A DNA stretch of 64,000 nucleotides from Tubulanus polymorphus (Eukaryota; Animalia; Nemertea), in assembly GCF_964204645.1 (NCBI RefSeq), contig NC_134029.1:930001-994000 (forward strand), in the 5' to 3' direction. The position numbers and the translations under genes are program-made. Numbering within the stretch: the first letter of the stretch is position 1; every line of letters begins with the position of its first letter. Shown piece after piece: positions 7,759 through 12,004 of this stretch. The notes under the pieces were generated by a model that made no database searches, was not told the origin of the DNA, and saw only the letters and a program-made list of their open reading frames with translations.

Positions 7759-8697
7759 ATGAATTCTACTCAGTTTGGACGACCTTACAACAGTTACATC
7801 GTCATCATGTCTGTTGAACGAAAGACTGGCAGCTACCGCATATTTTCGATAGCTTATTCGCTATTCTTTTTTTCACTGGGAGCTTTTGGAAATACGGCAT
7901 CATTCCTGATAATGATGAGTCGTAGATTCCGCAGTTTATCTTACGCTAACTATCTGATCGTTTTGTCTATAAATGACTTAATGTATTGTCTCAATTTTAC
8001 ACTGATGCCTGTTTTACAATTTCTACTCTTGAACGTAGTCACTGGTTCTATATTTGTTATAAACTCAATTATAGGTTGTCAAATCTATGAATTCATTATG
8101 GCGTTTAACTGCTGCAATAGTTCGTGGTTAATAGTAGCGATATCTCTAGAACGCGCGGCAGTTGTTCTCTTCCCGTTCACATCTCGTTTGATATGTACGC
8201 CGAGATTCGCCAGGTTTGCAATATCGATACTTATCGCAGTGAATGTACTTGTCCTGTATCTTCAAAGGATTCTGGAGTTACATTTTAACGAACGAACATT
8301 CGGTTGTTACTATGAGTTAGTTGACCAATATATACATTTTATCACTTACGTCATTCATGTTAACTTTATTCCTTTGACGGTGATAATCGTATCAAATATT
8401 GTTATAATAATTCAATTATTCAGAAGAGGTTCGAAAATAGTTTCGTCCGATCAGAAAACTACAAAATCAAAACGTACAACAATAATGCTTGTAACAGTTT
8501 CACTCGCATTCACAATATTTACAATTCCTTCCTCTATTTCAGCAATCTTGCCGATAGCTGAGAATCGGAAAGAATTTCTTTTAGATATTTTCACTCAGTT
8601 CCAAGTATGTAACTTTTCAATTAATTTTTACATATATCTTTTACTGGGACGAGAAGCGCGAGAATATTTCTGTATGAAAATAAGATGTTCTGAATGA
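7759..8697 (+). CDS. Intronless class A (rhodopsin-like) GPCR, copy 1 (peptide-receptor-like / putative chemoreceptor)
   Basis: 312 aa, seven hydrophobic segments, TM1 GN, TM2 LSxxD, TM3 Cys and SLER (DRY equivalent), ECL2 Cys (GCYYE), TM6 FxxxxxP, TM7 NFYIY, N-glycosylation site at N2. Confidence 0.92.
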   Translation: MNSTQFGRPYNSYIVIMSVERKTGSYRIFSIAYSLFFFSLGAFGNTASFLIMMSRRFRSLSYANYLIVLSINDLMYCLNFTLMPVLQFLLLNVVTGSIFVINSIIGCQIYEFIMAFNCCNSSWLIVAISLERAAVVLFPFTSRLICTPRFARFAISILIAVNVLVLYLQRILELHFNERTFGCYYELVDQYIHFITYVIHVNFIPLTVIIVSNIVIIIQLFRRGSKIVSSDQKTTKSKRTTIMLVTVSLAFTIFTIPSSISAILPIAENRKEFLLDIFTQFQVCNFSINFYIYLLLGREAREYFCMKIRCSE

Positions 8698-8852
8698 TAT
8701 AAAAAGAGTTTAGTTCTTGCATGGTCGAATCGATACTAGGAAAAAATTCGGTAGCCATTTCTCACCTAGAGATTGCATTGTACTTGTGCTGCCACCCACG
8801 GGTGCGGTGGATTGAGGAACTAATACTGGTTGACTCGACAATATGACGTCAT

Positions 8853-9190
8853 TTATAAATTGTAAATTGTAAATTGTAATTGTAAAAGTTATTTGTTGTA
8901 ATTTTCTAACCTACAAACGTCCCCTAGTGGCCGGTCGAATGAGGGTCTCCCCTCGCGATCCTGATTCGATAATTCTGAAATGTCCGGTCGGTTGAGAGGA
9001 CATTTTTCCAAGGAGCTCGCGATGTCAGCCGGCTGAGGATCCAGCAAAGCGTTGCTAAGGTGATCTATTAAATGATAAGAATATCTCTTATCAAGCGATA
9101 CCATTTTCTGACCCCACCACATTTTGCCCACCGACCAGGACATGACTATACCAGACACTCGAGTCTTGGTGTGAAGAGAACATAGCCACG
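8853..9190 (-). mobile_element. Probable 3' fragment of a non-LTR retroelement/SINE with a (TTTACAA)n tail (duplicate at 12160-12497)
   Basis: GC-richer block ending on the - strand in a short tandem-repeat tail. No recognisable protein. Confidence 0.4.
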
Positions 9191-9543
9191 TTAAATTGTG
9201 AATCCAATTTTTACAAAAATGTTATAGCGCCTATGATTTGAAGCCGTTTTTGAAAATATATATTTAATCTAATTCAAACCTAGACATCGTAGGTAAATTT
9301 TCCACACGATGTTGATGGGTTTTCCAATTCAGTTTTATACAAATTCATGTGCATAAATCTACACTGTAACTCACAATACGCTTTGTGATAAGGCCTAATC
9401 TGGAGTAATTGATTTTCAGTAAACTTTCAATGGAAATGATACGAAGATAAGCTCGTCACAAATAGGTGAATTCAATGGCTTCATTAGTTACCAAAATACA
9501 CGGGAGATAACAAGTGTCGCACGTCTGCGTGTTGAACTAAATC

Positions 9544-10470
9544 ATGAATTCAACACAATTGCAATATGCCCGACCTTATAACAGTTACATTCTTCTCATG
9601 TCTGTTGAACGAAAGACTGGCAGCTACCGCATATTTTCAATAGCTTATTCGCTCTTCTTTTTTTCACTGGGAGCTTTTGGAAATACGGCATCTTTTCTGA
9701 TAATGATAAGTCGCAGATTCCGCAGTTTATCTTACGCTAACTATCTGATCGTTTTGTCTATCAGTGATTTGACGTTTTGCATCAATTTTACGCTGATGCC
9801 TGTTTTACAGTCGTTTCTCTTGCACCTAAACTCCGGTCCGATAATGTTGGTTAAGTCACTAATTGGTTGTCAAATCTACGAATTTATAATGTCATTGATG
9901 GGTTCCAGCAGTTCGTGGTTGATAGTAGCGATGTCTCTAGAACGTGTGGCAGTTGTTCTCTTCCCGTTCACATCTCGTTTGATATGTACACCGAGATTCG
10001 CAAGAGCTGCGATATTGATAATACTCGCAGTGAATTCGATAGTCCTTATTGCAAGAGTTTTCACAACGTATCTTGACCAAATCGTTGGTTGTTACTATGA
10101 AGTCGCTGACCAATACATCTATTTCGTCACTTATGTGGTCCATGTTTATTGTTTACCTTTAACGGTAATAATTGTATCAAATTTTGTTATAATAATTCAA
10201 TTATTCAGAGGTTCAAAAATGATTTCGTCCGATCAGAAAACTACAAAATCAAAACGTACGACAATAATGCTTGTAACAGTTTCACTCGCATTTGCAATAT
10301 TTACACTACCAACAGCAGTAACTACTTTCTTGCCGATTTCCACAGAAGAAAAGGGTTTCTTCTTTACCCAGTTCCAAGTATGCAACTACTCGATCAACTT
10401 TTACATATATCTTTTACTGGGACGAGAAGCTCGGCAATATTTCTGCATGAAAATTAGATGTAAGAAATAA
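9544..10470 (+). CDS. Intronless class A GPCR, copy 2
   Basis: 308 aa with the same 7TM motifs (GN, LSISD, SLERV, GCYYE, NFYIY). Confidence 0.92.
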   Translation: MNSTQLQYARPYNSYILLMSVERKTGSYRIFSIAYSLFFFSLGAFGNTASFLIMISRRFRSLSYANYLIVLSISDLTFCINFTLMPVLQSFLLHLNSGPIMLVKSLIGCQIYEFIMSLMGSSSSWLIVAMSLERVAVVLFPFTSRLICTPRFARAAILIILAVNSIVLIARVFTTYLDQIVGCYYEVADQYIYFVTYVVHVYCLPLTVIIVSNFVIIIQLFRGSKMISSDQKTTKSKRTTIMLVTVSLAFAIFTLPTAVTTFLPISTEEKGFFFTQFQVCNYSINFYIYLLLGREARQYFCMKIRCKK

Positions 10471-10702
10471 ACTCAAAATGGCGACCATTTTAAATCATTC
10501 AGTAACGATTGGATAATGGTCGAATTTAAACTAGGAAAATGTTCATTTCTAACCTAGGAATCATATTGTACTTGTGCTGCCACTCACAGTCGCGGTGAAT
10601 AGGGAAACTAATGCTGGTTGAATTATTTCTAGGAAAACGTTCTTAAGTTTATCCTTTTCCTAACGATCGCAGTAAGATTCAACAGATCTCTACGAATCAA
10701 AT

Positions 10703-10790
10703 CCATCCTCCCTCCACACGGATTCGAACCCATGATGGCATCGAGACGTGAGTCTAGCATGCCATCAGCAATCCTGCCTGGACTGAAACC
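10703..10790. mobile_element. Short interspersed repeat with a B-box-like GGATTCGAACC core (SINE/MITE-like family)
   Basis: CATCCTCC...GGATTCGAACC...GATGGCATCGAG recurs at about 14010-14097, 58890-59010 and, inverted, 41635-41770. Confidence 0.55.
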
Positions 10791-10834
10791 ACCGGACACT
10801 TATTTCAAATCTCTCGAAGAATGAAGAATAAAGG

Positions 10835-10966
10835 TATATATATATATATATATATATATATATATATATATATATATATATATATATATATATATATATA
10901 TATATATATATATATATATATATATATATATATATATATATATATATATATATATATATATATATA
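10835..10966. repeat. (TA)n microsatellite, about 66 units (about 10 units in the duplicate at 14142-14161)
   Basis: Read directly from the sequence. Confidence 0.98.
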
Positions 10967-11065
10967 GCCTAACCTTTTCTAACCTAAGTAACCTAATCTA
11001 ACCTAGTTTTAGTTTGAAAACCTAGATTAGTTTTGAAGCTATACAAACGTTAGTAGAACTGAATC

Positions 11066-12004
11066 ATGAATTCTACTCAGTTTGGACGACCTTACAACAG
11101 TTACATCGTCATCATGTCTGTGGAACGAAAGACTGGCAGCTACCGCATATTTTCGATAGCTTATTCGCTATTCTTTTTTTCACTGGGAGCTTTTGGAAAT
11201 ACGGCATCATTCCTGATAATGATAAGTCGCAGATTTCGCAGTTTATCTTACGCTAACTATCTGATAGCTTTATCGCTCAGTGATTTGACTTTTTGCATCA
11301 ATTTTACACTGATGCCTGTTTTACAGTTTGTTCTCTTGCGCGTCAACACTGGTCCTATATTCATCATGAATTCACTGATCAATTGTCAAATCTACGAATT
11401 TATAATGTCATTTATGGGCTCTACCAGTTCGTGGTTAATAGTAGCTATATCTCTAGAACGCGCGGCAGTTGTTCTCTTCCCGTTCACATCTCGTTTGATA
11501 TGTACGCCGAAATTCGCCAGGTTTGCAATATCGATACTTATCGCAGTGAATGTACTTGTCCTGTATTTTCAAAGGATTCTGGAGTTACATTTTAACGAAC
11601 GAACATTCGGTTGTTACTATGAGTTAGTTGACCAATACATACATTTTATCACTTACGTCATTCATGTTAACTTTATTCCTTTGACGGTGATAATCGTATC
11701 AAATATTGTTATAATAATTCAATTATTCAGAAGAGGTTCGAAAATAGTTTCGTCCGATAAGAAAACTACAAAATCAAAACGTACGACAATAATGCTCGTA
11801 ACAGTTTCACTCGCATTCACAATATTCACAATTCCTTCCTCTATTTCAGCGATTTTGCCGATAGCTGAGAATCGGAAAGAATTTCTTTTAGATATTTTCA
11901 CTCAGTTCCAAGTATGTAACTTTTCAATTAATTTTTACATATATCTTTTACTGGGACGAGAAGCGCGAGAATATTTCTGTATGAAAATAAGATGTCCTGA
12001 ATGA
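11066..12004 (+). CDS. Intronless class A GPCR, copy 3 (duplicate of copy 1 with a divergent TM2-TM3 patch)
   Basis: 312 aa with intact 7TM motifs. Confidence 0.92.
   Translation: MNSTQFGRPYNSYIVIMSVERKTGSYRIFSIAYSLFFFSLGAFGNTASFLIMISRRFRSLSYANYLIALSLSDLTFCINFTLMPVLQFVLLRVNTGPIFIMNSLINCQIYEFIMSFMGSTSSWLIVAISLERAAVVLFPFTSRLICTPKFARFAISILIAVNVLVLYFQRILELHFNERTFGCYYELVDQYIHFITYVIHVNFIPLTVIIVSNIVIIIQLFRRGSKIVSSDKKTTKSKRTTIMLVTVSLAFTIFTIPSSISAILPIAENRKEFLLDIFTQFQVCNFSINFYIYLLLGREAREYFCMKIRCPE

Follow-up and report, generated by a model that had tools for sequence, protein, structure and literature searches.

A ligand-pocket segment of a tandemly duplicated receptor gene in the ribbon worm Tubulanus polymorphus, probably acquired by gene conversion from a distant paralog

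How can two receptor genes of one tandem duplication, nearly identical along most of their length, come to differ at 20 residues within a single short segment? The question is raised by a cluster of G protein-coupled receptor (GPCR) genes in 64,000 nucleotides (nt) of the genome of the palaeonemertean ribbon worm Tubulanus polymorphus (contig NC_134029.1; G000:C5:930001-994000), a stretch hereafter called the window; positions without a prefix are counted from its first letter. Its open reading frame (ORF) list contains six intact intronless ORFs of 307-321 amino acids (aa), which we call c1 to c6. The pairs c1-c2 and c3-c4 form a head-to-tail duplication with an offset of 3307, which aligns without gaps over 7718-10854 and 11025-14161. 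We refer to the segment in which c1 and c3 part company as the patch, and abbreviate transmembrane helices as TM and extracellular and intracellular loops as ECL and ICL. The elements concerned are the following:

7718..11005, + strand: unit A (c1, intergenic DNA, c2, (TA)66, AACCT-rich tail), with identity to unit B at offset 3307
11025..14200, + strand: unit B (c3, intergenic DNA, c4, (TA)10, AACCT-rich tail)
7759..8697, + strand: c1, intact intronless class A GPCR gene, 312 aa, with what appears to be its own lineage's TM2-TM3 patch
7917..8118, + strand: the presumed native patch of c1, homologous to the probable converted tract of c3 and holding 48 of the 69 mismatches between the units
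11066..12004, + strand: c3, intact chimeric GPCR gene, 312 aa, the probable recipient
9544..10470, + strand: c2, GPCR paralog, sister lineage of c1/c3
12851..13777, + strand: c4, duplicate of c2 with an identical protein

The 69 ungapped mismatches between units A and B over 3137 nt are spread very unevenly, as follows in unit A coordinates:

7718-7916: 2 mismatches, ~1% divergence
7917-8118 (202 nt): 48 mismatches, ~24% divergence
8119-8732: 14 mismatches, 2.3% divergence
8733-10854: 5 mismatches, 0.24% divergence

The clustering in the 202-nt patch (7917-8118 in c1, 11224-11425 in c3) has a binomial P of 5e-41, against just 21 base differences in the remaining 2.9 kb. At the protein level, 20 of the differences between c1 and c3 lie in residues 53-120 and only four elsewhere (149, 168, 232 and 311). 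Even outside the patch, the c1/c3 gene region has diverged roughly tenfold more than the remainder of the duplication (2.3% versus 0.24%, Fisher P = 3e-6), and c2 and c4 differ by three bases, all synonymous. The original prediction, made from the window alone, had described the duplication, the split of 20 residues against 4, the near-identity of copies 2 and 4 and a 33-nt exact match between c3 (11349-11381) and c5 (14909-14941), and all of these numbers were reproduced. Unit A 8733-10854 and its counterpart 12040-14161, comprising the intergenic DNA and c2/c4, agree at 99.76% of positions, without a single mismatch across the 1260 nt of 8733-9992, and the switch in divergence lies ~35 nt past the stop codon of c1/c3.

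The place of the patch in the receptor was read from an AlphaFold2 (AF2) model of c3, built on a 41-sequence family alignment, and from Ballesteros-Weinstein numbering anchored at N45 (1.50), D73 (2.50), C107 (3.25) and R132 (3.50). On the helices of the model (TM1 24-53, TM2 61-92, ECL1 93-103, TM3 104-137) the patch reaches from the end of TM1 through ICL1, TM2 and ECL1 into TM3, of which it covers the outer half, and the numbering agrees. Five of the 20 substitutions are at ECL1 positions; the others fall at 1.58, at 2.45, 2.48, 2.49, 2.52, 2.53, 2.55 and 2.66, and at 3.22, 3.24, 3.33, 3.35, 3.36, 3.37 and 3.38. In class A receptors the orthosteric pocket is lined by positions 3.33, 3.36 and 3.37, and in many cases by 2.53 as well. 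The patch replaces residues at the ligand-pocket positions 2.53, 3.33, 3.36 and 3.37 in addition to those in ECL1, and the location that the original prediction had assigned to it, the TM2-ECL1-TM3 side of the pocket, is borne out by model and numbering alike.

The differences in the patch are old. Synonymous divergence (dS) separating c1 from c3 reaches 0.92 in the patch but 0.054 in the 3' flank; of the 36 codons changed in the patch, 16 are synonymous changes, and the patch ratio of nonsynonymous to synonymous divergence (dN/dS) is 0.19; the patch therefore consists of transplanted old variation and not of new mutations under positive selection. GC-biased conversion was also considered and was dropped on the base composition of the changes, 24 of which run from weak to strong pairs (W>S) and 16 in the opposite direction (S>W), which is unremarkable.

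From where, then, was the segment transplanted? A genome-wide search with the c3 patch gave one outstanding match at 98%, the runner-up reaching 88%. This top match is an intact paralog, called D here, which lies far from c3 in inverted orientation and has a close sister gene, D2:

G000:C5:1273476-1274417, - strand: D (L037), intact 313-aa paralog, representing the donor lineage, 333 kb from c3
C5:360223-361161: D2 (L051), sister of D, 91% identical to D over the whole gene
11224..11425, + strand: minimum conversion tract in c3 (202 nt), with 44 D-type informative sites and 98.0% identity to D

Identity between c3 and D is 98.0% in the tract and falls to 67.1% on its 5' side and 72.3% on its 3' side. 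When sites are classified wherever c1, c3 and D are not all alike, c3 reads, apart from isolated exceptions to the pattern of runs, as 53 c1-type sites followed by 44 consecutive D-type sites together with four unique to c3, and then by ~150 c1-type sites. At every one of the 44 in-tract sites where c1 and D differ, c3 has the base of D. The patch of c3 is one uninterrupted tract from a single paralog lineage, that of D; its maximum extent is 11210-11460, giving an overall range of 202-251 nt, and the longest exact match to D covers 145 nt (11237-11381).

A codon alignment of 39 intact paralogs was used to set this match against the family as a whole. The c3/D fragment is the top-scoring shared fragment among 703 pairs, and in a Sawyer-type column permutation the observed score of 53.1 compares with a null maximum of 16.6 in 10,000 permutations (p < 1e-4). 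The patch tree unites c3 with D at a support of 100/99, whereas the tree of the rest of the gene recovers both (c1,c3) and ((c1,c3),(c2,c4)) at 100/100; a (c3,D) clade imposed on the rest of the gene lowers the log-likelihood by 351 units and is rejected by the approximately unbiased (AU) test (p-AU 2.8e-5). Both short-tract gene conversion and discordant trees for TM2-TM3 had been proposed in the original prediction, and both proposals stand, the former on the single D tract with its much less similar flanks. Its view of the patch as a mosaic of copies 5 and 2 has to be given up, as one donor outside the window covers all 44 informative sites. The 33-nt match to c5 and the c2-like motifs are ordinary family resemblance, c2 being only ~82-84% identical to c3 in the patch at the DNA level.

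What is found at this locus is a set of discordant nearest relatives with sharp boundaries between them, a donor that has kept its sequence and a degree of sharing in excess over chance. We therefore propose that the c3 patch arose by short-tract ectopic gene conversion from the D lineage, in a non-reciprocal event with c3 as the recipient, and put the probability of this reading at roughly 0.88.

The direction of transfer can be judged from the relatives of both partners. The last 75 nt of the tract at its 3' end correspond to alignment columns 555-629; there D2 matches both D and c3 at 96%, against 69% for c1 and 79% for c2. Because D2 shares it at this level, the 3' tract sequence would be native to the D lineage. 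The c1 patch seems to behave as the c1/c3 lineage's own sequence: its dS to c2 (0.71) is close to that of the 3' part of the gene (0.67), and no donor for it was found genome-wide, the closest matches reaching 80-83% when the patch was searched whole, and 85% and 79-82% when each half was searched separately. Since D does not carry c1's version of the patch (the two patches are 78% identical), the event would be non-reciprocal, and hence gene conversion and not a double crossover. It is very improbable that the polarity was the reverse, with the c3 patch native and donated to D, and the c1 patch replaced or hypermutated. This scheme could draw on the low identity of D and D2 over columns 470-554 (75%), which makes the patch of D partly foreign to its own clade, and on the patch tree, which puts c1 outside the starred clade of c2, c4 and other chromosome-5 paralogs. 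The c1-c4 clade, however, lies outside the chromosome-5 clade in the rest-of-gene tree as well, making the placement of c1 concordant, and the patch data are compatible with both (c1,c2,c4) and (D,D2,c3) as clades. Reverse polarity would also need two events with coinciding tract ends on both sides, besides being at odds with the affinity of D2 in the 3' columns and the missing donor for c1.

The same comparisons offer a rough age for the transfer from the D lineage into c3. Inside the tract, c3 and D differ at four positions (11230, 11236, 11382 and 11395), and at 11230 and 11395 c3 retains the state of D2, which D has lost. The ~2% divergence accumulated between c3 and D since the event is similar to the 2.3% between c1 and c3 on the 3' side of the patch, and far above the 0.24% seen in c2/c4 and the intergenic DNA. 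These levels suggest that duplication and conversion are of similar age, and that the c2/c4 part was homogenised later; the low divergence of that part and of the intergenic DNA could come from a later homogenising conversion or from a mixed-haplotype origin. A candidate excess of change on the c3 branch, with an end branch of 0 for c1, was dropped: site-wise polarisation with c2 assigns ~7 changes versus 2, with 3 ambiguous, which is not significant.

A number of points weigh against conversion of c3 by the D lineage. On the 202-column patch alone the AU test does not reject the (c1,c3) clade (delta lnL, the log-likelihood difference, 12.7; p = 0.23), as the branch of c1 is long and poorly placed and can attach anywhere at little cost; the case therefore rests on the distances, the support for (c3,D) and the site pattern. 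In the 5' half of the tract D and D2 are so strongly different that D2 cannot polarise it, and D's version of that half has no older relative in the 39-paralog sample. The tract is known from one reference assembly only, and the protein collection contains no independent copy of the c3 protein. The order of the event relative to the homogenisation of the c2/c4 part is read from divergence levels only, and any functional consequence or selective value of the swap is hypothetical.

Uncertainty about the assembly bears on two further alternatives. The duplication might be false, c1 and c3 being alleles laid in tandem and the patch an allelic polymorphism; the (TA)66 versus (TA)10 repeats and the patchy divergence of 0-2% would be in keeping with a pair of haplotypes in a heterozygous marine invertebrate. 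We give this only a slim chance, as the head-to-tail junction between the units is well defined, with ~20 nt of filler, and upstream of them the two sequences are not homologous. Moreover, the conversion from D would stand regardless, and only the label of the partner would change, from paralog to allele. That the c3 patch is an artefact of assembly or polishing, pasted in from D reads when the consensus was built, seems hardly credible, even though tandem repeats of 3.3 kb that are nearly identical are hard to assemble. The tract is not a verbatim copy of D, with two of its four differences showing the D2 state, and a pre-conversion c3 would have been ~78% identical to D here, so that D reads should not have been recruited. 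Both junctions are in frame with the ORF intact, and like patches occur in two other gene pairs at other loci. Hypervariability by point mutation after the duplication, through positive selection or local hypermutation and with no transfer of DNA, would account for the clustering of changes on the TM2-ECL1-TM3 block and its canonical pocket positions, but is refuted by the donor match at all 44 sites and by the synonymous changes and dN/dS given above, and its probability is practically nil.

If c3 was converted by the D lineage, its product would be an intact chimeric receptor with TM1 and TM4-7 as in c1 and TM2, ECL1 and the outer TM3 as in D. A changed ligand specificity of c3 is likely on the positions affected, and the combinatorial generation of new specificities, as envisaged in the original prediction, is plausible. 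Nothing in the sequence points to somatic or programmed diversification.

How the exchange may have come about is suggested by the layout of the family. In a block analysis of 37 paralogs, constant blocks at codons 49-64 (ICL1), 121-152 (cytoplasmic half of TM3 and ICL2), 217-256 (ICL3 and inner TM6) and 289-304 (TM7 and helix 8) alternate with three variable blocks, TM2-ECL1-TM3, TM4-ECL2-TM5 and TM6-ECL3-TM7. Where two paralogs have the same amino acid, they share the codon at a rate of 0.8-0.99 in constant blocks and 0.5-0.7 in variable ones, which suggests homogenising conversion or a constraint at the nucleotide level, limited to the cytoplasmic face. In the motif LFPFTSRL the proportion of same-amino-acid pairs that share a codon is 0.99. 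The two junctions of the c3 tract map as follows:

11210..11223, + strand: interval of the left junction, 14 nt that c1, c3 and D have in common, inside constant block 1, FLIMISRRFRSLSYAN / ICL1
11426..11460, + strand: interval of the right junction, 35 nt over which c1 and D agree, inside constant block 2, SSWLIVAISLER

The left interval is bounded by the last c1-type site at 11209 and the first D-type site at 11224, the right one by the last D-type site at 11425 and the first c1-type site at 11461; a base unique to c3, at 11446, lies within the latter. The left junction lies at the inner edge of constant block 1, within 56 nt that contain one mismatch, and the right junction at that of constant block 2, within 93 nt that contain two.

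A possible course of events would begin with the head-to-tail duplication of the two-gene unit c1-c2, giving c3-c4. Near the time of the duplication or soon after, c3 would have received 202-251 nt from the inverted D lineage 333 kb away. The constant blocks plausibly provided the homology for strand invasion and resolution between genes that are ~70% identical, and the variable cassette between them may have been copied by non-crossover repair, for example by synthesis-dependent strand annealing. The tract in c3 would then have diverged from D by ~2%, and the c2/c4 part and the intergenic DNA would have been homogenised again later, to 0.24%. One might go further and see here a cassette system, in which the constant blocks act as recombination anchors and ligand-facing cassettes are swapped ectopically among hundreds of genes over hundreds of kb. 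We hold this extension to be doubtful; its basis is the near-identity of the constant blocks, synonymous sites included, among paralogs that show a dS of 0.7-1 in their variable blocks. If true, it would make germline shuffling of half-pockets a regular and not an accidental source of receptors.

Exchange is not confined to c3. The second case involves c5:

14617..15582, + strand: c5, GPCR paralog, partner in the second exchange
14789..14941, + strand: exchange tract of c5, 153 nt identical to L045 (G000:C5:538545-539395, 405 kb away)

Here c5 and L045 are 99.5% identical over 182 columns, with flanks at 75-76%, and c5 has 19 consecutive L045-type sites relative to L048, the sister of L045; c5 may have been donor or recipient. 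The third case is the segment that separates D from D2, 85 nt of TM2-ECL1, where dS is 0.97 while identity around it is 92-98%; the 39-paralog sample contains no donor for it. Swaps are thus shown to recur at TM2-ECL1-TM3, with three apparent cases among the 39 sampled paralogs, a count that speaks for recurrence and not for a preference over other variable blocks. Close sister pairs were used for this count, as a 3SEQ-like scan of triples proved too noisy to count events, with many triples at the permutation floor, because the blocks differ in rate and the tree is star-like. D and D2 also differ by 11.6% in the TM4-ECL2-TM5 block and only 3% in the TM6-ECL3-TM7 block, a further patchwork for which no donor was found in that sample. 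Between c1 and c2 (7759-8184 and 9544-9975) the N-terminus and TM1 are ~90% identical (dS 0.39) and the rest of the gene 77% (dS 0.67-0.71), and this closer N-terminal part hints at an older exchange between neighbouring genes.

The receptors of this cluster are identifiable as class A (rhodopsin-like) GPCRs. A Pfam scan that covered c1, c2, c5 and c6, of which c3 and c4 are the duplicates of the first two, gave 7tm_1 scores of 64.8, 67.4, 59.0 and 56.6 bits, respectively, against a gathering cut-off of 30.5. The c3 model (predicted TM-score, pTM, 0.80) has seven helices and helix 8 (298-308), and its top 50 Foldseek matches are all class A GPCRs with TM-scores of 0.63-0.81, the best being opioid, neurotensin, somatostatin, orexin and chemokine receptors (0.7-0.8). 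By sequence, the best matches are the CCK-A and NPFF receptors (E 1e-8 to 1e-5). N45, D73, C107 and R132 are invariant in the 41 family sequences and C183 of ECL2 nearly so, and C3.25 stands exactly 25 residues ahead of R3.50. The family is like the peptide-type class A GPCRs (CCK-A, NPFF, SSTR2, opioid, neurotensin) in fold and in N1.50, D2.50, C3.25 and R3.50; however, it is only ~18% identical to them, has the variant motifs ERA for DRY and NFYIY for NPxxY, and forms an orphan expansion without orthology to any named receptor.

At E <= 1e-20 the protein collection holds six homologs, all from Tubulanus polymorphus itself and none from outside it, and the annotated protein closest to c3 is only 61% identical. 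Genome searches gave 426-552 first-look candidates for the family, whose size is put at no fewer than ~450 candidate copies, and most members of this intronless family seem to be missing from public protein annotation. Weak similarity of family members to Srsx/Srw in the Pfam scan, together with the large intronless tandem family, hints at a chemosensory role. To our knowledge, the receptor repertoires of this animal phylum, Nemertea, are almost undescribed.

The process at work is the same as in vertebrate smell receptors, in a new family and a new phylum, and no new mechanism is involved. The explicit proposal that gene conversion produces mosaic olfactory and vomeronasal receptors, and so diversifies them, goes back to Sharon et al. 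1999, as cited in PMC1995454, and studies of V1R receptors routinely test for gene conversion (PMC3914689). Olfactory and vomeronasal receptor clusters likewise consist of intronless class A GPCRs in large tandem families, with short non-reciprocal tracts and mosaic receptors. The worm family differs in being distinct and lineage-specific, with a donor and recipient that lie 333 kb apart, inverted and ~70% identical, and in that donor, both junctions and polarity are unusually clear. Conversion among opsins (LWS and RH2 of fish) also acts on tandem class A duplicates and can change pocket or spectral-tuning residues, though it mostly homogenises close duplicates; the worm tract, by contrast, brings divergence (dS ~0.9) into one member of a near-identical pair. 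Cassette-type segmental conversion of immune genes is familiar from chicken immunoglobulin pseudo-V genes and from microconversion in the major histocompatibility complex. Mosaic variant surface glycoproteins (VSG) of trypanosomes provide a case of the cassette type in antigenic variation (PMC13233330). These antigenic-variation and immune cassettes resemble the worm genes in layout only: conserved anchors enclose a variable segment, and this segment is copied non-reciprocally from donors that are silent or paralogous. They are somatic or clonal, operate at high frequency and often have dedicated machinery, whereas the worm case comprises a few germline events fixed in one reference genome.

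The interest of the locus lies in a clean diversifying ectopic conversion from which donor, recipient, junctions, polarity and rough age can be read in one genome. The c1/c3 pair amounts to a natural experiment, the same scaffold differing almost only in TM2, ECL1 and the outer TM3, and is well suited to testing how much ligand specificity this half of the pocket carries. For the ~500-gene family as a whole, trees and dN/dS scans will be misleading unless recombination is handled first.

The remaining features of the cluster and its surroundings are these:

10835..10966: (TA)66 microsatellite near the end of unit A; (TA)10 at the corresponding place in unit B
24874..25797, + strand: c6, a more distant paralog of the same GPCR family

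The duplication extends past the TA microsatellite and ~39 nt of AACCT-rich sequence up to the filler at the junction. Directly downstream of c5, units of 61/121 nt are repeated in tandem over 15680-16211 (the 61-nt unit ~8.8 times, with a match of 85-90%), followed by C-rich CCCT/CCCTCCC minisatellites with periods of 20-51 nt at 18908-19213 and 21949-22116, and by a 100-nt two-copy repeat between these two, at 19836-20046. Two 162-nt fragments outside long ORFs, at 23826-23987 and 26119-26280, are similar (80% and 66%) to the family's TM2 region, and are probably gene relics flanking c6. At 27491-29974, two adjacent ORFs match the N-terminal beta-propeller of nucleolar protein 10 (E 2e-72), its second domain and NUC153, which identifies a predicted NOL10 orthologue adjoining the receptor cluster. 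Long overlapping ORFs on both strands at 42481-43920 have only a weak low-complexity (His-rich) match, and this stretch is probably repetitive and non-coding.

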